A stretch of 63,947 nucleotides of DNA, the filler included, from Choristocarpus tenellus KU-1152 (taxonomy: Eukaryota > Protista > Phaeophyceae), in assembly GCA_964200185.2 (NCBI GenBank). It is 11 parts of 11 records of this genome, joined end to end, with 100 filler letters (N's around TTAATTAATTAA, not from the genome) between each part and the next. Parts side by side here need not be neighbours in the genome. Positions count along the whole stretch, not along the records: positions 12,609 to 33,867 come from CAXNAD020000354.1; 10 more parts are not named here. One strand, 5' to 3'. The stretch's first letter is position 1; the number at the start of each line of letters is the position of its first letter. Under the pieces are notes generated by a model that saw only the letters and a program-made list of their open reading frames with translations, was not told where the DNA came from and ran no database searches. The position numbers and the translations under genes are program-made. Shown one piece after another: positions 5,216 to 23,793 of the stretch.

Positions 5216-7716
5216 TCAAAGTTCAAATGCAAATGAACTCAGATTATTGCGTAGGGGTTAGTACTTACATTCACGATCGTCGTGTGTGCATTGAGGGGTG
5301 GGTACGCGACCAAACTGTTCAACACCACACACATTGATAATCTTGGCCTAACGTGCACATTTGCCCTCTGGATTTCAAACTGCCATGATATTGAGGCCTC
5401 TTCATGTACATGAAAAAAATCGTTGCCAGTGGCGACAGGCCCGTGCTATATACGCCCAGATAGACATTCCCACGTTCATAGAGTGGCTATGCCGTTTTTG
5501 ACACAACAGTACTTGCACTCACAATTCGGGTTTATGTGGAGGTTCCGAGAGATATTTTACATAGTATAAATTGCTATTACTTTGCACAATATGGTGCGGT
5601 CGGGAATGTAGCTGAGAGTGGTCGGCATTGTATGTGTTTATACCGGTGATCTCGTGTGGATAGATGTAGTGTGGGGGGGACAGTAACGCTATCTACACCT
5701 AAAACCCGAATTAAGTTTTACATTAATGAAGCAATAGCGAGAAAATCCCAAACGTGAGGGGCATGTTCGTTCTTTCGCCAAAGCTGATACAAGGGATCTT
5801 CGAACTGTTTGTAGAGAGGAACGTGTAGAAACAAATTAGCCGAACACGCTCCATACCGTGAACGGCCGGTTGTCAAGGAAGGGTTGACCCAGAATGTGCG
5901 CCAGAGCTACAGCAAGTTATGCGACAATGGTTGGGTGGAGGGCCGTAACTACAGTGTTGTACAACCGATTGGGTACACGATGGCACCCACATACTATTAC
6001 AGGCTATGCGAACAGATTAATGTTGCAACATTCATCATGGGTGCTATATTATGATAGTGTTTGCGAGATCGGTCTTTCAGGAACACTCCTGAGTGAGATG
6101 CACAGAGGGTGTACTTTTCTGGTAGGGTACTCACCTCTTGCTTCCCTTTGGAAGCATGGCGGCGTTCGGTGGTTGGACTAAGTCTCTTCTTCTATTGAGC
6201 GATGTCTGCATGGGGTGGGCACGTTGTAAATGGGACAGGGAAAACCGACAAAAGGAGAGAGAAAATGTTTTGTGCATCGAGTTAGGCCTGGAGAGCATGG
6301 CAGGTCGCGGTCGGGTTACATCCTCCTCGAAGGGTACGCACCTGATGACCTTTCACAAAAAGGAAGTCCTGTAGTGTTTTTCCTTCTGGGTCAAAGTATC
6401 TGGGGNNNNNNNNNNNNNNNNNNNNNNNNNNNNNNNNNNNNNNNNNNNNTTAATTAATTAANNNNNNNNNNNNNNNNNNNNNNNNNNNNNNNNNNNNNNN
6501 NNNNNCCCCCTCCCAGATACTTTGGGTCAATCATGTCATCGACGCTTGCAAAGGCACACCTAATGCAAGAGCATCCACCAGCGTGGAGAGGTGGGTTTGA
6601 AGTATGTACACAGTGTCACTTGTACCCGGTATATTTTCCCCCCTGCTTGAACATACAATAGTAGTCCTATCTGAGAACAATGTGATCCGACCGTACTCAC
6701 CCAGTTCACTTTGCAGTTACCATGCCTATATGTCTGATATACAAAGCTAGAGATCCCTCCAGTATGGAGTAATGACTTACCTATGTATGTATATGCACGT
6801 GCGATATGTTTTTCATGCTTCAACGATATCATCTCATCCAACCGTCCCTGCGCTGCTGCATCATGTACCACGTGTAAATATCTACAGAATATGCGATCTG
6901 CTGCTGGCATATGATACCTCTAGGATTCCATCCACCATCCCTCGTATCCACCTCCAACACATATCCCATCCATTCATATACATACGTGCGCTACTAAAAG
7001 AGGAACGGCACGAACAAAGATAAGGACATGGGTCTGAAGCGAGACCTGGTGATGTCCTAGATAGACTACTGGGCTGATACATACGGGCAGTTCATGCCTC
7101 ACAAGTCCACAATTGTGATCTACGCCGCGAACAAACAGGTCGGTTTTGCCCTTGATTGTGGAGAGGTTGGCTGCACCCTGTGTTGGAGTTAGATGCAAAC
7201 CGTGTGACCCGGCAGTATGTAGAAAAGGTGGATCTAAGTAGTATTTCGAGTGGTGGATGTTCATTACTTTGACCGGTCTAATATTATGGTTAAAAGAACA
7301 TGTCAAGATTCATACACAGTGTTATCTTTTTCGTTTGCTATGTCGATATTTCAATATTCATGATGATACTCTTTGTCGATTTTACGAAGGAAGACACAAT
7401 AACTGTTATTTCAACGCCGCACACACCTACTCTGCGGCCCCGGGCCCGGTCTGACATTGGTAGGAAAAGTGTGTACTTCGTAGGTCTAAAGCGCTTCGCG
7501 ATGATGATGATGATGGTAGATTCGCCTCCTTTGCCGCCTCTGCAAACGGCAGCGAGGCCCGAACCGAATGACGCTCATGGTAGATTTAATCAGATCATTG
7601 TATTTGCTCTTTCGTAACACATGATGTAAGCTTGCTTGATCCTGTTTTCCGCGTTCTCAGTCAAGTTATTGGTCAGCCCGCCTTCGAGAGATGTTGCAGG
7701 GTGTTCTTCAAGTGTT

Positions 7717-13089: not shown

Positions 13090-16000
13090 GGTATCACAGT
13101 GATTGGTTGCAAGGGTAGACAACAAGCGTTTGAGAGTGGTGTGTACCACAACCACATGTCCGTTCGTGCGTACATCTACGGCGAAATGTATCGCGCGCGG
13201 TATTGACATTTTCCTTTTTGGATTCATATTTTTTCGTTGTGTGCCAACAACATGTCGGAACTTGTAACTACAATATTGTACAAGTATATCTTCCATTTTT
13301 TCAGTGTTTTGAGGTGATGGTTATCTGGAATAATTTGGGGGGTTCAAACCCGTTCGACGCTAGACTTCTTTTCACCGAAATCTGGTTTCGACGATGCTGT
13401 TCCGCTTGGCAACTTCAACCGATTTTATACCTGTACCATCGTTTTGTGTGTGTGTGTGTCTATATCACAAAAGCTCAGGACTCAGATCAAGGTGGAAACT
13501 TCAGATTGGGGTCTTGGAGAAGATTCGAGGGAGGAGACGGAGTAACGAGGGGTAGGAGCGCTGAACCCAACGCGCGAGAAGCAATGTAGAGAGGGAGGCA
13601 GTACAATTTGTTGTAGTGTAATTGTAGTAGAGGGTTAGTAGCTAGTGCGAGAAATAATAGTGCAATGTGCAATGTCCTTAGATCAAGGGTTGGGATCATC
13701 CCTGTCAAATATGATTTTTTTTAGATATATAAAATTGATCTCTATCTCGTGATAACGGTCTCCAATTTAGATCTAAATAGTGGGTGTAGCCCCCTCACAA
13801 GGAAGATACAGCTATCCCAGGAGGGTCCAGATCTGCAATATCTCAACCTTACGACGGGGGACGTCCGCAATCCCAAACAAAATGGCCCAGTACCTTTGGT
13901 CCCTACTGCATCTTACAATAAACCCGTGAGATCATGATCCCATCGTTCCTGACCTCCCAACTCCTTCAACCAAGCCAAGCAACATCGTGACAGGTGGGAA
14001 GCAATTAATGGGGAATATGGGAAACTTTTGTCAATGATATATAAACTTTTTTTGGCAAGAACACCCTTTTCCGCACCGAAAATGTTATTGTTTCCACTGG
14101 CTAGCGATTCTGGACAAATGCAGACAGCTCACAGGCTGCAGTCGCTGGTAACCCCTCCAAACCCCTCGAATTCAGCTTTGTAGCAATAGATGCGCCTAGG
14201 TCATTTTCTGTTGACTTAGCCCTGTTCCATATTGAATAGCTGCTCTCATCTAGTTATCGTTGACTGACTTGTAGTTCAGGGCTTCCAAGACAGCATGGGT
14301 GTCATTCAGGACACATTCATCCCTATTATTAAGCTATGGAGAAGATCCTTGACGGGTCTGTGGCACGTGGCTAGGATACAGCCAAGGAGTTGATTATTGG
14401 TGTGATCAAAGACCAGGTATTCAAGGCTTGGCACGACCAGTGGGGGGTTGATCCTGTTGAGTGGGGCGTCTGAGACCCCGTTCAGTGATTTGACAAGGCC
14501 TGAATAGAGCAATGGGTAATGAGTGGCCTTGTTAAAATTATAGTGATATAAGATAGGAGAGAGACAAAATCGGACTTGTACTTGCACGGTGGCTTGATAT
14601 GGAGGGCCGCCCCCCTGAGAACATAGGAAGTTGAAGTTCCTGCTCCATGATGACCTCAAGGTTGTAGTCAACCTGGAGCCGTAGGGTTGCCAAAGTACAG
14701 GGTGTTTGCGTCCATCACTGTTTTATGTATAGGGTATTCCCTCCTAGCGTTGCTGTGCAATATGTAAAAGTATAGGACAACCTATACACCATTTTTGAAT
14801 AGTAAGTATGAGCTCATATTGATGCTGAAAGAGTGCAAAGTGTGAGGCAGTAACGATATTGGATACCGTGTCCAAACTGACAAATTCCATGTGATGCATG
14901 CCAAGGGTTTGTATCTTTTCCTTGAATTTTAACGACTGACATAATATAGCTCACGCTCCATCGCATTCACAGATGACAGAACTAGTACATTACAAAGTAA
15001 AGGAGGATAATAATAGTTTCTAAAAGTGGTGTGCTACAGCTCTACAAGTACAAGTTCTAGAGGGGTAAAACCAGTGCTTGTCTTTAGGTAGTGATCTTAT
15101 TATTCTTCCTCTAGTATACACCACCATATTGATATTGTAGTTGAAAGGTTCCTCACCTCTAAAAACATGAGTACATAGTTTGGAGCAGATTAACCAACCT
15201 AAGACCTAGCCGACTTTAAACATTTCCAATTTTTCGGATCAAACTAATACCCTCAAGCCGAACCAATATTAACCGACTCCAAGAAATCGCCTAACTCCAA
15301 GTAAGTACATACTCCAAGGTATTTGCATCAACTCTAATTGTGGCAGTTCGATATGCCGAAGCAGAACGTCTCAAGTTTTGAGGTGTGATTGAGGAGGTAG
15401 AGTTGTTGATGGCTGCAAAATGTCTTCAAGAGTACGATAGCTCTTTTCCTTTGGAGTGTTACACCCTCTCTTCTGGTCTCTATAGCAGTAGGGATTTTTC
15501 TTTGTTATCAAGTGCTCTACTTCAATGCAGCGATTTGATTATGGAGGTGGTGATGGGAGTTAGGTGGGTGAGCGACTACCCATCATGCTTATGAGCACAG
15601 TGCACTTCCCCTCAACAGCAACGGATCTTCTGGTGGCTCCCATTGTAAGAAGAAATAGTTTTAGTGGACTTGAGAGTACCTCAGATCATCCCACTAACCA
15701 TATTAGTGCAGTGCACAATCACTTCTTGAGGCACATCCATCATTTCCAGCTCAAGAGAATAAAATGTAAACAAAACATTATGATAAATACAAATACTCAA
15801 TGTAGCTGTCTGACCATTACTGATACACAATACACAATGCAGGAGTACATCAAGGATGTCATAAGTAGTACATGTCAGGTTGACCAGTACACCACACTTA
15901 CCAGGCTGTGACTCAACAAGGTCTCAGATCTGAAATAATAGCGGGACTAGAGTGGTACTTATCACATCTGCTTGTCACAAGTTTCCTGGTTCAATTGCAA

Positions 16001-17121
16001 ATTGGTTGAAACAAAGATCTCACACTGTACTAATGCGGTCCTCCAGCCAGGCCCAGCATCAGAAGTGCAACTGCTCCTGGCACAAATACAAAGGACAAGA
16101 TTGCAACACTGTGATAAGAGTCCTCCAATGGTCATACTGTGCATGCACAAAATGTCTGGAACATCTGACCTCGGCAACTCCTTTGCCTTTCTTCCGCTCA
16201 TCCCACCCTTGCTCCTCAAAATATATCTAGGTGCACACCTACAAGCTCTTGAGAAGGTTACCTTTGCTACAAGTTTGAGACTCCAGGACTGGACTCAACG
16301 CATGAATAGAACATAATTGAAAACCAACAACCCAGGATTCAAACAAGGACTTTCGCTCAGACCCAGACCAGTGACTGGACCCGTTACTCAGGCAAATCTT
16401 GGAGTAAAAATATGTATTGCAAAATTACATTAGACCCACCTCATAGACCCCATCAAGGACTTGAGTGGAACTCAAGGTCATGGGTGCAAACTGCAACACA
16501 TTAGATTTGACAACCATGGTGCACTTTCAGCATTGCATTTACACGGGAGGGGGATAAACAAGGCATCACGGATAGATCATGCTCACAATGGATAGAGCAA
16601 GGAGAAAGATACCTTCCCTCTGAGGACAAAGCATTCTGTCATTCAAGCTAACACTTACATAAATGTAGTTGAGCAATACACATTTGTCTTTCCACAAATC
16701 TAAGCCAAAATCACTAGAGAAATAGTGGGTTCTTGACGCTTCTTGATTGCTGCACACAAAGTGCATTTCCTTACCCCTCCCCTCTCTTTCACATCACAAA
16801 CAAGACTCTGTGGCAATATCCAAATGCTATACATTGTTTAGGGCACCTGCACTATACCTCAAAGCAGTAATTGTACTTCTGGAAGGGCCCAACTACCTTC
16901 AGTAGTGGTAGGTAAGAAAAACTAGGAAAGGAAAAGAAGTGCAGCAGGGTCATCAAGGATCAGACCAGTCACTACAAAAAGGGTCAACTGCATGACGCGG
17001 GAACTGATACTGCCATTACCAACACAATTCACACCCCCATAGTAGGAGGACTGCAGACACTGGACATTATATATACTCCCCATCTAGTGGGAGAGGATGG
17101 GTATGGACAGGGGGCATGTTG

Positions 17122-18348
17122 TCATAAAGTAGTCTGCAAGTACCCCTGCCCTAATGACTTTTTACTTCCAGGTGGTGCAGCCATGGTGGTCCTCTCGATG
17201 AGCTCTTCGAGGTGGGATGTGAAGAGCTCACAGCGGATCGGCATCTCCAGCTCATAAAAGGGATTCTAAAATAAGGGGTTCACAAGTACATGTGCGTAAC
17301 GGTGGAGGATAATTGCAACAGAGCCGGCGGAATGTCCAGTTGGTGACAGACAAGGGTAAGGACTGATACAAAATAATGCTGGGGTCTACTGCAAGTATGC
17401 GTAGGTACCCAGAAGATCGTGGAAGAAAAAATCATCACAGATAGAGGTACAGGATTTTCAGGATTAGATGAGACAACACTCAACTGGGGGGAACGAGAGG
17501 CCGAGAACAGATCATTCTGAAAACAAAAAAAACGCTATCGCAAAAGCAATCATGGACCTGCTTCTGTTCTGATGGCTATTGTGAGATGGACAATAAGCGG
17601 CGAATTCAATTGTGGCGGAAGAATTGATATATTTTTTCACTCTGTCCTAGGACTGGGGTAGGTTTGTAATACCTTCAGCACATAGTCCGTGTACAGCTCA
17701 TATATCCCTTGCAAAACCTCCCCCAAGTCTGGTGTGCCAGCCTCCGCCGTAATAACGAACTTCACACCAGTAAGTGTCTGGAAGCTTTGTAATTTGAAGG
17801 TATCCGTCTCTAGCTTTTCGATTCCGGAAGAGGGCACCGGAGAAACCTGGCAACCAAGACAAACAATGAACATGTAAGTGGTTTCATGACAATTGCATCC
17901 CTGCGTCTTCCCTTACCCACGCTGGTTATCTGTGTCCTTCAATTTTCCTTCTCTTTTTTTTGAACTAATCCAATAATGTGTGCAGAGATTCACAGAGCTG
18001 AGGTGAAGTGTTGAGGGATTGGGAGTCAAGAAGGGTTTCCAGAGGTTGCACACAATATCGTGCCTCGACAAATACCTGAGATGCGATTGCATGGAGACTG
18101 TGGAACGTAGAACCCAGACGTAGCCAATCATTGCTTGACAACTTCGGAGCCGCAGGAGAAAGGTTCTAAGGGCGGCAGGTGGACGGAGAAGGGGGTGTAA
18201 GCGCCAAAGGCTTCAACAAAGCACAGAGAGTATCGTTGTGCCAAGATGTTGGTGAATTGCATAGGAAGGGGACTGAGTAGTGAAAACTGCTGACCTGATT
18301 GTATATTAGTCCTCCCGACTTGTTCACAACAAAAAGCTGGAGGAACAT
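17122..18348 (-). CDS. TRAPPC4: Trafficking protein particle complex subunit 4 (Trs23/sybindin)
   Basis: Exons 18295-18348, 18076-18165, 17673-17846 and 17122-17265, all GT-AG and phase 0: MFLQLFVVNKSGGLIYNQ...LRLGSTFHSLHAIA...FQTLTGVKFV...[26 protein letters not shown]. Confidence 0.97.
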
Positions 18349-18598: not shown

Positions 18599-21500
18599 AT
18601 GCGTGTGACCTACCTAGTCCAGTCATCTAGTCGAGGGTGGCAGAGGCATAAGGTTCCTCACCAAGTGTCTCTGGAGGCAGATAACAAATTACGAGTGATA
18701 GATTTCGAGAGTCGTGCAGTGAAGGCAAGCTTTGCCCTACTTTGTACGATTAGATCTCAACATACCCCTTGATTGCTACACCAAAAAGATAGTATCTGGC
18801 ACGGTCTGAACTGTTGTATCCTTCTACAGTACCCAATTCGTTAGGTATACGTAACTAGACGTATTTGCTACATCACGACGAAGGCGAATGGATGGGTTGA
18901 ATTCGTAGAGGTGACCTCGGATCGGTGGCACCGGTGTATCAGTATCATCTCCAGTGTATGAGATTTTATTCTCTCGTTGACAAAGAAATTGAAGCAACTC
19001 GTTTGTCCAGCTCTCCGTTCGTCACGTACTCAAGATATTTTGAGTTTGGTGGTGTTGTCATCAACACCAGGTGCAATGTGTAACTAAGAGGCTGGCTGAT
19101 CCCCGCCAATATCCGTTATCATTCTATCCGTCCCCGAACCTTCTCCATGTCTGCCTTCCAATAGGAGAACATCAACCTGAGGAGTGGAGAAATACTTCAG
19201 GTCCAGGCAACGTTCGCTGCTGCTAACAGGAAAAGCAGCATCAAGTAAGAGCCATTCATCATCGAGCGAACCCTGTATTCAAGCTCTATGCTTCCTCTAG
19301 GTCGCTCGGACTTCGTACTGTGTTTGAAGTCACAAAAACTCGTCATATTCTCGTCCAACCGAGTGACGCTGTGGATATGGGGACGAACAGATATTCATAC
19401 CTGATGGGTTGCAGCAGTGCTTTCAGCATCATGCTCGCCTCCTTCTCTATCTCAATTGTCTCTACAATTTCTAACGTATATGAATATTAATAGTACCCAT
19501 CGCTGACCGATATGATCCCTCCCTGGTTGCTCTCATTCTCTGTAGGATTGCACTGGCTGGTCAGCCTGTTCGAAAAATAGCCCTATTGTTCGAATCGGAT
19601 GTGACTGCAGCTGAGCTATGCCATGGTCTGCATAACCGAGGCAAGTAAGCATTTAATATATGTCGTGTATTGGATCTACAATATATGGTTACGAAACGAG
19701 TACTGTCAATCAATTATGTTGGTGGAGGGTTGATGAGCACGATCACGGACACCACTACCCAGTATACGATCACCGCAATATCAATGTGAGAGAGGCGGGC
19801 TAAATGAACTTTCAATGTGCACTGAAGAGTGAAAATTTCTGTGGGGTTGGTCTCTGGCAGAGAGAAGATACAGAGCCATTAGCACTACGTCTTGGCATCT
19901 TGTGAAAGAGTCCTTTACAAATTTCATTAAGATGGCCAAAGCACATGGCTTATTCTCTTTATGATGTGCATTTACAGAAATCACACCCTCTCCTTACCAG
20001 ATAATATTTCTCTTTTGATATGGAATATGTGAGAGGTAAGGTAGGCTCAAAACTTTTTCGACCCAAACGATTATCCCCACAGTTTCAAAGCCATTTATGT
20101 AGCGGCAAAGAAAGGTGCCTATATCGACTTTGAATTATATGGCAGGCACTCCAATTATCGTATGTACTGTTCTGAACATGTTTCCACACACAATGACATC
20201 TGATCAAATCCACAGGAGTTCATGTACGAGGCATGGAAGCCATCAGCGAAAAGCTTGACCTCAACAGCAGTAACCAGTGTGTAGCACAGGCTCTTGAGAC
20301 TGACCTCCCAGATATTTCAAGGCCTGAGGTGCAAGCATTTATCATTAGGTGTGTGACCCTATAATATATTGTAGAAGGAATGCAGGGTATTTTAAAAGGA
20401 AAATGTATCAAGGTCTGTCCACACCAGGTATCATGCAAGAGGTACATGGCTTATACTTTTTATGTGCATATTTTGTCTGTGGAAATTTTGCACATGTTGT
20501 CATATGAAGGGAACAAGAAGAAAAACATCCAGTAAATAGTTAAATAAACACGTCTGTATGCTTGCAGTATTAATATTTCCCTCCATTATATGTACTACTA
20601 GTGTTACAATACGTACATATATGTCCAGTGTACAATAGTCAGGACATGCCGAAATGCTGCGCATCACTACCATGAAATATTAAACCTGTAAAAACTCAAA
20701 TGTATTGCTGACACTGGGTATAACCACAAGAAATGGACTATAATAATCCAGATACACCGTCCTGGGCATTGTCCAATCAGTATGACCCAAAGCATTTAAG
20801 GGGGTAGAACGTTTACCCTGTTTGTCCATTTGGGGCTTGGCTTCCCTTCTTTTTTTAGTCCTTTTTCGGTTTTCAAAACATTTCGGAGTAGGTCAAATGT
20901 TTACCACGATCAATGGTGTGTCCGGAGCAAGCATATTGACTCCTGCTAAAAAATATGATAGCCAAAATTACATCAAAATCGCTACATTGGATTTTGGACC
21001 CCAAACAGATGTGGCCCTACCCTCTTAAATGCTTTGACTCATTTCTAGTAACGTGGTGAGACGCAAACACATTCTTCCTTGCCAATACAACAACAGTTAA
21101 ACAACCTCAAATAGAAGTACACCCACTTGCCCCTTCAGCTCTTAATGCTATTGACATCACTTCCACCTTGCTGTTCTCCTGCTTGACTCTTGGATAAACT
21201 CTGGGTCTCGAACCCAGACTCCTATTCCAAGATTCGTTCATTAAATTTGTTGGAGACCTTGGGGAACTCTTCAACCACGTAATTTCCCAACTTCCCTCAA
21301 CGGGATTATTACCAGGAGCAACAGCCATGCCTAATGCCCCCCCTGACAGCCCTCAACCAGTGGATTCAAGCATGTCTCGCTCTGTTGGTGGGGATTGGGA
21401 TATGCATAGGGCAAGCAGTAGTAGGAGCAGTGTTGTCATGGGCAAAGATAGTAGTGATAGTGTACACAGTGGACAAAGTAACAGTTGTGCAACAGTGGAT

Positions 21501-23793
21501 GCGACTCAAGGGCAAAGAGAATGCAGGTCCACCACTGAGGATCATGGAAGATGCATAATTGTGGACAAAGAGGGCGATCTTTGTTGTGCAGAAAATAATC
21601 AAGGGGAGGACTCCATCATCAGATCTAAACAGGTGGGAGTAGGAGGTACTAACAACCGGTATTTTACCCCAAAAAGTAACTGCAGAGATGGGCATGGTTG
21701 GACTGGAGATGGTGATAGGGCTGGCAGTGAGAATGGGATTGTGAATCAGGGGAGGAAATCGTCTGATGGCAACCCCACAAGTTCTCATCGAGGTAAGAGT
21801 GAGAGAGAAGTTACGGATAGGGCATTGGTCAATCTTACCCCCCCTTTGCATAATCATGGGCTAGTCAGGGACATGACTGTAGTAGAGCAACAAAAGGAGA
21901 TATACGCAAAAGGTGCAAGAGAGGGTTATGAAACACTACAAAGACCTGTACGGGGTAACAGGGATGATTCTAAAGGGGCAGATCATGAAGTGGAGAGGGA
22001 TGTCAACAGGAACAAGAAAAAACTGAAAACTGACAGACAAACAAAACAGAGGCAAGCATCGATTGAAGTGGTAGGCATTGATTACAACAAGAACAAGTCT
22101 ATGGGACCTGAACCAAAACAGAAAAAAATAATAGCACCAAGATCAAGACAGTTTGAGGGCAACAGCACCCAGAGGGCTGATGCCCTTCAGGAGGATAGGC
22201 ATGTGGGGCAAGGGCAAGGACTTGGTCCAGGTTATGGAGAGAGGCAGCTGCCACAACAGAAGGACCAGATGAGAAAGCGAGGGGGAAGGCAAGATCAAGG
22301 AGGCAGAGAGCATGGTGGTGGTTGTGGACGGAGAAGAGGTCAGAGAGGACAGGAAAAGGGAAGACGAATTGTGGTAGAGACTGTGAAGGTAAATGTTGGA
22401 GCGGCACCCACTGCAAGTGGGAGGGCGGCTGGCCTTTCAGTAGCACTCAAAAAGATCTGGTCTGCTGTCAACAAGCATTCAAGTGCATGGCCTTTCAGGT
22501 GCGATATAGGATTGAGCAAGAAGGAGGAGTACCTATTATATGATTGCAAACCGTTGAATTGTTGATGTATATTGTTGTATCCAAATTACGCGGTGTGGGC
22601 AACGGGACCAGGATCTGCACGAAAAAACCACTTTCACTATTAACAGCAATATAAGAAAAATAAAACAGATAATTGGTAGTTCACTACATTATATATCTCC
22701 CAAACATAACTACATATTGCAATTGCTTGCTGGTATGACATCCCAAATGCAATGCTGCAGTGCTATGCTAGGAATGCATCTTGACAAAGATATGGCGATG
22801 AAATGCATGCTCTTCTCTATAGCAACCCCTGACAACTGAATTGAATAACGGGTGTGGATCTCGAACTTGTGAGGGCACTGCAGCGCAAGGAGAATGTGTC
22901 CTGGAGTGATCTACACTGTGAAAAGCAACCGCTTGTATCAATGTTCTCAATTTCGCTACCCCTACGCTTACAAATTGATATATCTGTTGTAATCTTGTTT
23001 CTTGACAGAAAATGCGTGGATCTCGATAAAGTTCCTGACTATCTGTCCATTATAAAAAAACCCATGGGTGAGTTCAACGTGTGACAAGCGACATGATTTT
23101 CTCAACAAACTCAAATACTTCCCATTGACTCAATTTATATAAGTAGTCTATGTTATTGGTCTGGATATTGACTGAAACATAAAAGAAAAGTATGCACACA
23201 GTATGTTTTGTCTCATGTGCTCTAACTATTTTGAATGATGGCATTGCTTGTTGAAAGATCTGCAGAGCATACTTGATCGCTTGGACAAGGACACACACTA
23301 CACGAGTGAGAGCATGCTGCAGGACGATCTTCACCTCATATGCAATAATGCTAAGGATTACAATGAAGCAGACTCGCTGATTTACAGGCAAGGAAGTATG
23401 TGAACACAGACACAACTATGTGAAGATGGAAGATCTTTGATGTTTCTGCTATTGGGAGGGACTGCTACAGCGCTTTGTAGAATGAATAACATGAATATGA
23501 AAGGTGTCTACTTACTAAAGTGAACAGAAGGCTTTGCATTCCATGAGTGCAAGTCCTAGCTGAACCCAATGGAGCAGTACTTAACTTGAATCAACACCCT
23601 TTCCCGCCCTGCATCAACATGAACTCAGCACCTTTCACATGTTGATTTATGTGAAGATGGCCGAGCACCTGTCTCCAGTTCCTCTTTCTTACTGCTTGAC
23701 TACTTTACCCAACATACTTTGAACACACTTGTGTACACTCCACCCTACAGGGAAGCAGAAGAGCTCCAGCGGTTCATTGACACGCAGTTTTGA
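18599..23793 (+). CDS. REC114: Putative REC114/PHS1-like meiotic DSB protein fused to a C-terminal bromodomain (648 aa, 8 exons)
   Basis: Exons 18599-18724, 19165-19244, 19546-19640, 20216-20348, 21218-22498, 23009-23067, 23258-23387 and 23751-23793 join in phase (1947 nt, ATG to TGA). The N-terminus MRVTYLVQSSSRGWQRHKVPHQVSLEADNKLRVIDFESRAVKENINL...NRKSSIKIALAGQPVRKIALLFESDVTAAELCHGLHNRG has a PH-like pattern. It is followed by EVQAFIIRLLFQDSFIKFVGDLGELF (REC114 C-terminal-like motif) and a C-terminal SAWPFRKCVDLDKVPDYLSIIKKPMDL...NNAKDYN...YREAEELQRF bromodomain. The bromodomain call is near certain; the REC114 call is motif resemblance only. Confidence 0.65.
20784..21040 (+). mobile_element. 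MITE family A variant in intron 4 of the REC114-like gene
   Basis: Same interior; variant TIRs GACCCAAAGCATTTAAGGGGGTAG / CTACCCTCTTAAATGCTTTGACTC. Confidence 0.85.
22430..23793 (+). other. Bromodomain-coding part of the 18599-23793 gene (GCN5/PCAF-like)
   Basis: WPF motif, VPDYxxIIKxPMDL and the DYN acetyl-lysine-binding Asn, spread over four exons. Confidence 0.95.

Follow-up and report, generated by a model that had tools for sequence, protein, structure and literature searches.

The REC114 family of meiotic break factors (REC114 in mouse, Rec114 in S. cerevisiae, Rec7 in S. pombe, PHS1 in plants, DSB-1 and DSB-2 in C. elegans) has in common a beta-rich N-terminal domain of about 100 residues ending in a helix, together with a helix-turn-helix in which the hydrophobic residues of the SSM7 motif, including an invariant Phe, keep a fixed spacing. 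Known members place these parts in the order PH domain, long disordered region, C-terminal SSM7, with one extra helix in C. elegans. Budding yeast (Spp1-Mer2) and mammals (PRDM9 marking) link the axis-bound break machinery to H3K4me3 through a histone-mark reader that is a protein in its own right. Hop1/HORMAD offers a case of a lineage-variable chromatin-binding module (PHD-wHTH; in ecHOP1, wHTH) on a conserved meiotic protein (PMC12678776), but this is an axis protein rather than a subunit of the RMM complex, and its module is not a bromodomain. Brown algae are multicellular and lack DNA methylation and H3K27me3, PRC2 having been lost, and every brown alga tested has H3K9ac marking its start sites (PMC13076208); their SPO11-recruiting factors are stated to be unidentified (PMC12678776). 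The papers we searched describe no stramenopile or brown-algal REC114 and, as the first-pass annotation of this DNA had supposed, no fusion of REC114 to a bromodomain.

The window analysed here (63,947 nucleotides of Choristocarpus tenellus DNA, filler included) contains an eight-exon gene of 1947 nt, encoding 648 residues and a stop (Table 1). It is probably the REC114/PHS1 orthologue of brown algae, with the fusion produced as a single protein. Its layout would be a PH-like domain (approximately residues 1-98), a short linker, an SSM7 helix-turn-helix (approximately 138-170), a disordered basic linker, and a C-terminal bromodomain (approximately 545-648). The gene is present in single copy, as in the known REC114 systems. 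The order of motif and disordered region is reversed relative to those systems, a point unremarked in the first-pass annotation: instead of closing the protein behind a long disordered region, the SSM7-like motif lies about 30 residues past the PH-like domain, and is followed by about 370 disordered residues and the bromodomain.

Table 1. Features of the fused gene and its surroundings; positions are those of the window.
Feature	Position	Strand	Content
TRAPPC4/sybindin-like neighbour, head-to-head	17125..18348	-	PF04099, E 1.6e-15
Exon 1 (42 aa)	18599..18724	+	PH-like domain strands 1-4, conserved Trp in strand 2; GC donor
Exon 2	19165..19244	+	PH-like domain, middle portion
Exon 3	19546..19640	+	Final strands and closing helix of PH-like domain; GC donor
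Exon 4	20216..20348	+	Short linker, then helix 1 of REC114 SSM7-like motif
MITE-like repeat, high-copy, intron 4	20782..21042		26-nt terminal inverted repeats
Exon 5 (1281 nt)	21218..22498	+	SSM7-like helix 2, linker, bromodomain helix 1 and WPF shelf
Exon 6	23009..23067	+	PDY-bearing ZA loop of bromodomain
Exon 7	23258..23387	+	Bromodomain helices A-B and Tyr-Asn acetyl-lysine anchor; GC donor
Exon 8	23751..23793	+	Helix C of bromodomain, then stop

The first-pass annotation had spliced these exons in phase into one 648-residue reading frame; lengths, phases and splice sites all agree, the orthologues share the structure, and the gene model is confirmed. Each exon is stop-free in its own phase, and introns 1 to 7 use the donors GC, GT, GC, GT, GT, GT and GC, with AG acceptors throughout; the three GC-AG introns have their donors at the codon positions of GT donors in orthologues. 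The splicing rests on cross-species conservation, not on reads. The same architecture, sought in other brown algae, turned up with matching intron phases: all eight exons were recovered from Ascophyllum, and exons 2-8 from Sphacelaria. As read from these sequences, the fusion is kept across three brown-algal orders, and because of that conservation it is much better supported than when it was proposed. Identity to the orthologues is 48% for exon 1 (Ascophyllum), 23-31% for exon 2 (83 nt in the orthologues, phases unchanged), 42-48% for exon 3, 44-47% for exon 4 and 59% for exon 7 (Sphacelaria protein), and all three species have exons 3, 4 and 6 at 95, 133 and 59 nt. Both halves of the gene show more synonymous (0.71-0.90) than nonsynonymous (0.21-0.34) differences. 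Two metagenome scans were blank or uninformative, and therefore reached no taxa beyond brown algae.

The identity of the bromodomain is certain. Exon 7 alone matches PF00439 (E 8e-6; 26.1 bits against a Pfam cut-off of 21.7), and three orthologues show the full four-helix bromodomain at 57-68 bits, above the Pfam cut-off. The residues on which the domain had originally been recognized hold up, with WPF, PDY and Tyr-Asn present and PM/DL straddling exons 6 and 7. The four-helix domain is shared with the rest of the family (PCAF/GCN5, BRD7, CECR2, TAF1, BET), without a close solved relative; the nearest single-domain solved bromodomains (PCAF/GCN5, BRD7 and CECR2, E ~1e-10) are nearly equidistant and so give no clue to the ligand. 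The brown-algal subfamily is small: within the lengths searched, the database has only three clear members. The putative acetyl-lysine-binding residues, a ZA-loop Tyr and the BC-loop Tyr-Asn, are kept in Choristocarpus, Sphacelaria and Hapterophycus. Ascophyllum has Tyr-Phe in place of Tyr-Asn, and because it has lost the acetyl-lysine-binding Asn, chromatin reading would not be universal. The WPF shelf is degenerate in Sphacelaria and also altered in Hapterophycus.

From what is known of RMM complexes, two copies of the protein would dimerise, their helix motifs enclosing a MEI4-like partner's N-terminal helix, the PH domain would touch TOPOVIBL/SPO11, and the basic disordered region would bind DNA and promote condensates. 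Least certain are the steps that follow: the dimer's two tethered bromodomains might extend from the complex on the axis to acetylated nucleosomes, the likeliest target being brown-algal promoter chromatin with H3K9ac/H3K4me3, and might bias breaks toward those nucleosomes as an in cis counterpart of yeast Spp1-Mer2, with the acetyl-lysine domain inside REC114 itself. That the bromodomain steers breaks to acetylated chromatin is a tentative proposal to which we give a little less than even chances, and we are as guarded about the wider reading, a REC114 with its own acetyl-histone reader, by which REC114-MEI4 would direct SPO11 to break acetylated promoter chromatin and need no separate Spp1- or PRDM9-type adaptor. 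If true, the break machinery could locate open chromatin unaided, which would add another route by which hotspots are specified. Ectocarpus geneticists gain a named candidate for SPO11 recruitment; the bromodomain Asn provides a single-residue test of break-site choice in a lineage without DNA methylation or H3K27me3, and its natural loss in Ascophyllum a comparative one.

The bromodomain may instead have no part in choosing break sites, binding a non-histone acetyl-lysine, DNA or a partner, tuning timing or retention on chromatin, or being dispensable. This is a mechanistic variant within the best explanation and not another identity for the protein; we somewhat doubt it, while counting it a serious possibility. 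The Asn to Phe change in Ascophyllum and the altered WPF shelves, in a domain that nevertheless stays conserved, speak for it, as does the missing ligand clue from solved structures. The Tyr-Asn of three of the four species, and the WPF, PDY and Tyr-Asn together in Choristocarpus, speak against it.

The helix motif supports the assignment to REC114. The MEI4-binding and dimerisation motif of mouse REC114 comprises L227, F230, L231, L235, F240, F243, V244, V247 and I254 (PMC10425845). These positions are V, F, I, L, F, F, V, L and V in Choristocarpus, ungapped: all nine are hydrophobic at the exact spacing, and five are identical, among them each of the three Phe that were tested in mouse. Sphacelaria and Ascophyllum have the same residue classes at these positions, also ungapped. 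The SSM7 hydrophobic pattern with its invariant Phe is thus found in all three species; its rough chance is ~2e-6 per protein, and it occurred at none of 169,000 positions of control sequence. The equivalents of the yeast motif residues I402, L406, F411, V415, V418, L422 and M425 (PMC10393192) are hydrophobic here too, and AlphaFold2 begins helix 2 just before the Phe equivalent to F240/F411. The near-invariant acidic residue (yeast E419) is replaced by Gly, Lys or Ser in the three species. It is not strictly defining, since DSB-1 of C. elegans has Arg at this position and the salt bridge is absent from plant models (PMC10393192).

In the PH-like domain, exon 1 alone is modelled by AlphaFold2 as four strands (pLDDT 78), and its conserved strand-2 Trp recalls the invariant W51 of mouse REC114; fold searches with that model alone gave no match. 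Exon 3 agrees with Arabidopsis PHS1 (sequence printed in PMC9957857) at 7 of 19 residues, ungapped, by eye only. Exon by exon, and without a eukaryotic positive control, PF15165 (REC114-like), PF25349 (PH_PHS1) and PF03525 (Meiotic_rec114) gave no match at the locus; these searches are weak because the pieces are only 26-43 residues long. Per-exon PDB, atlas and fold searches with the N-terminal half were blank, having little power on pieces of 26-60 residues. No Pfam match is on record for the 365-aa product of Ascophyllum, and this counts modestly against REC114. The original recognition of a REC114 pattern is thus borne out in part: the motif residues match published mouse, yeast and Arabidopsis data, and no HMM or fold match accompanies them. 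We regard REC114 as the likely identity, short of proof.

It is unlikely, if conceivable, that the protein is instead a brown-alga-specific chromatin adaptor in transcription or repair, built from a generic PH/EVH1/RanBD-type domain, amphipathic dimerisation helices and a bromodomain, with the SSM7 likeness a convergence of amphipathic helices. Such an adaptor would accord with the blank family and structure searches, with the missing E419 equivalent, with a head-to-head housekeeping neighbour, and with the strand-helix pattern of exons 1-3, which presumably fits any PH-superfamily member. However, the nine spaced positions with their three mouse-tested Phe and the pattern's absence from control sequence argue against convergence, the matches to PHS1 by eye are collinear in both domains, and the blank searches, run on single exons, were of low power.

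Exon 5, as originally claimed, is one stop-free exon linking the helix motif to the start of the bromodomain. Its open frame has a chance of ~1e-11, the other two frames containing 17 and 36 stops. The corresponding exon is stop-free across 426-489 codons in Choristocarpus, Sphacelaria and Ascophyllum (chance 1e-8 to 1e-11 each); the basic, Gly/Arg-rich linker is merely 21-33% identical among these species, yet the frame is open in all three. A folded domain hidden in the linker was rejected, AlphaFold2 giving pLDDT <50 over exon 5 residues 30-399 (three-sequence alignment). Searches with exon 5 and with its first 40 residues against 5.8 billion proteins were blank or uninformative. NCBI annotation divides the locus inside exon 5, into 365 and 311 aa on CAXNAB020000578.1 in Ascophyllum and 180 and 195 aa in Sphacelaria, which would suit two products, one short and REC114-like, the other a bromodomain protein translated from an internal start. 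We consider this very improbable, and two separate genes are rejected, as the upstream annotated pieces lack a stop codon, share a frame with the downstream starts across gap-free assembly, and lie in a frame open in three species. The fusion stayed hidden because the orthologues are split in this way; the brown-algal gene is mis-annotated, current annotations breaking it in pieces.

Logan contigs end at the high-copy repeat of intron 4, but a chimera assembled across it is ruled out by the orthologues: Sphacelaria and Ascophyllum also join exons 4 and 5, with no change of phase. Depth over that repeat reaches 600,000, against 18-20 in its flanks. The start codon of the TRAPPC4/sybindin-like neighbour is about 250 nt from position 18599, leaving little room for an upstream exon. 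Scans of the C. tenellus genome for PF15165 and PF03525, without a eukaryotic positive control, and for MEI4 (PF13971), without a positive control, found nothing. PF25349 gives two weak sub-cut-off candidates elsewhere in the genome (E 0.056, with four stops; E 2.2). Genes of the SPO11/TopoVIA family are present.

A gene that joins a REC114-like N-terminal half to a bromodomain is real and conserved in brown algae, as a single reading frame of four parts: a PH-like domain, a helix motif resembling SSM7 (the C-terminal MEI4-binding and dimer-forming motif of REC114), a disordered linker and the bromodomain. The eight-exon model of the first-pass annotation holds, its exons being each open in phase and summing to 1947 nt, or 648 codons plus a stop. 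Three of the seven introns (1, 3 and 7) begin with GC donors (18725, 19641 and 23388), all GCAAG; these are validated by the orthologous introns, which are mostly GT there. Sphacelaria intron 2 apparently uses a GC donor as well, and the donors seen in the TRAPPC4/sybindin-like neighbour are GT. The gene occurs in no RNA run; two sequencing runs contain it as continuous genomic contigs, with no splice joints. An additional exon upstream of exon 1 is unlikely, because only about 250 nt separate its start codon from that of the divergent neighbour. The Ascophyllum flank examined has no TRAPPC4-like match, and the Sphacelaria and Hapterophycus contigs are too short to tell.

Coordinates of the gene under study and of associated features in the window
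Feature	Position	Strand	Remark
Exon 1	18599-18724	+	
Exon 2	19165-19244	+	
Exon 3	19546-19640	+	
Exon 4	20216-20348	+	
Exon 5	21218-22498	+	
Exon 6	23009-23067	+	
Exon 7	23258-23387	+	
Exon 8	23751-23793	+	
TRAPPC4/sybindin-like gene	17125-18348	-	head-to-head with gene under study
High-copy MITE-like element	20782-21042		intron 4; 26-nt terminal inverted repeats containing TTAA

Exon 7 alone, searched against 1.84 billion representatives, gave a single one-domain match, a Sphacelaria rigidula protein at 59% identity, which as a query in turn found proteins of Ascophyllum nodosum and Hapterophycus canaliculatus. The one-gene architecture extends to two of these relatives, with conserved exons and phases in Sphacelaria (exons 2-8, of which 2-4 lie unannotated upstream of the annotated protein; exon 1 was not found on that contig) and Ascophyllum (all eight). 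The Hapterophycus contig starts within exon 5 and confirms the bromodomain end only. Exons 3, 4 and 6 keep the same lengths (95, 133 and 59 nt) and phases in Choristocarpus, Sphacelaria and Ascophyllum. Identity across species reaches 62-65% at the start of exon 5, is 42-48% in exons 1, 3 and 4, and drops to 23-31% in exon 2. In both halves of the gene, differences at synonymous sites (0.71-0.90) are far more frequent than at nonsynonymous sites (0.21-0.34). Ascophyllum exon 1 encodes a Gln/His-rich 30-residue leader (6054-6143 of the Ascophyllum locus L004) missing from Choristocarpus.

NCBI annotation divides the gene in two (365 + 311 residues in Ascophyllum, 180 + 195 in Sphacelaria), as if these were separate genes. 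This reading is rejected: neither upstream piece closes with a stop codon, both share the frame of the downstream starts with no gap between, and exon 5, described as stop-free from Choristocarpus, is open over 426, 469 and 489 codons in the three species (chance 1e-8 to 1e-11 each), with just 21-33% identity between them. The 365-residue length is exactly that of modelled exons 1-4 together with 514 nt of exon 5. Going by length and endpoints only, the depositors' annotation, which was guided by transcripts and proteins, thus seems to share the modelled junctions. Nor is the gene an assembly mis-join across the intron 4 repeat, where read depth is some 30,000-fold above the flanks and Logan contigs are interrupted, since the orthologues carry the identical exon 4-5 link. 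The exon 5 linker is basic and Gly/Arg-rich; AlphaFold2 places helices at exon 5 residues 4-24 and 399-418, with low confidence over 30-399.

The N-terminal half probably belongs to a REC114 orthologue, judging from its residue pattern, and membership stops short of proof. Nine mouse REC114 residues with a role in MEI4 binding or dimer formation (L227, F230, L231, L235, F240, F243, V244, V247 and I254; PMC10425845), among them three whose mutation lowers MEI4 binding (F230, F240, F243), correspond without gaps to V, F, I, L, F, F, V, L and V in Choristocarpus, and both orthologues have the same residue classes. The composition-based chance of this pattern, about 2e-6 per protein (0 occurrences in 169,000 control positions), understates the true chance, because periodicity is inherent in amphipathic helices and the match had been seen before the pattern was set. 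Yeast Rec114 hydrophobic positions (PMC10393192) fall in the same register, and AlphaFold2 predicts the key Phe immediately past the second-helix start. Comparison by eye with Arabidopsis PHS1 as printed in PMC9957857 finds in exon 1 the strand-2 Trp and, after it, a VSL strand. In exon 3, 7 of 19 residues match across the final strand and helix with no gaps, and a likewise gapless alignment of 30 residues of the helix motif includes 4 identities; these likenesses are collinear, though each is individually weak.

Against the proposed REC114/PHS1 identity, the Pfam models (PF15165, PF25349, PF03525) gave no match at the locus exon by exon, single-exon queries drew blanks in PDB, atlas and fold searches, and the Ascophyllum 365-residue product has no Pfam match on record. 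The near-invariant acidic residue (yeast E419) is replaced by Gly, Lys or Ser, and the domain order differs from the PH domain, long disordered region and terminal SSM7 of known REC114s. The blank searches weigh little, because RMM proteins are frequently less than 10% identical between lineages and, according to PMC9957857, elude sensitive searches in algae. The Choristocarpus genome (164.1 Mb, 27,310 contigs) contains a single copy of the motif exons, and no further REC114 candidate scores above profile cut-off there. A sub-threshold PH_PHS1 candidate (G000:C8939:4221-4364; E 2.2, 69-residue open frame) is probably noise. SPO11/TopoVIA-family genes exist in this genome; a MEI4 profile search, run without a positive control, found no match.

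The bromodomain exceeds the Pfam cut-off in all species, is about equidistant from those of PCAF/GCN5, BRD7, CECR2 and TAF1, and retains WPF, PDY and Tyr-Asn in Choristocarpus. Tyr-Asn is also present in Sphacelaria and Hapterophycus, whose shelves are altered; in Ascophyllum (L004 11473-11605) the pair is Tyr-Phe, Phe replacing the acetyl-lysine-anchoring Asn. Predicted acetyl-lysine binding is thus likely ancestral, and is not universal among the orthologues.

By analogy with characterised RMM complexes, the protein would dimerise around a MEI4-like helix, touch TOPOVIBL/SPO11 through its PH domain, and bind DNA and condense through its basic disordered region. Tethered by ~370 residues, both bromodomains of the dimer might then seize acetylated nucleosomes and, we tentatively suggest, bias breaks toward promoter chromatin; brown algal start sites are marked by H3K9ac and H3K4me3, and these algae have lost DNA methylation and PRC2 (PMC13076208). 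Nearly as likely, the bromodomain serves retention, timing or non-histone binding instead. Titles and abstracts of the papers listed for both REC114 and bromodomains announce no fusion, though an alignment figure may mention one, and literature on REC114 in brown algae, Ectocarpus, stramenopiles and Phytophthora yielded no brown-algal orthologue, subscription literature lying mostly outside both searches. SPO11 recruiters are regarded as unknown in the Ectocarpus axis paper (PMC12678776).

Elsewhere, the window carries a multi-exon light-harvesting gene of the chlorophyll a/b-binding family (PF00504; 26301-28165, minus strand), and interrupted minus-strand frames at 14300-16300 that by eye resemble a decayed retrotransposon, the one searched being blank in Pfam.
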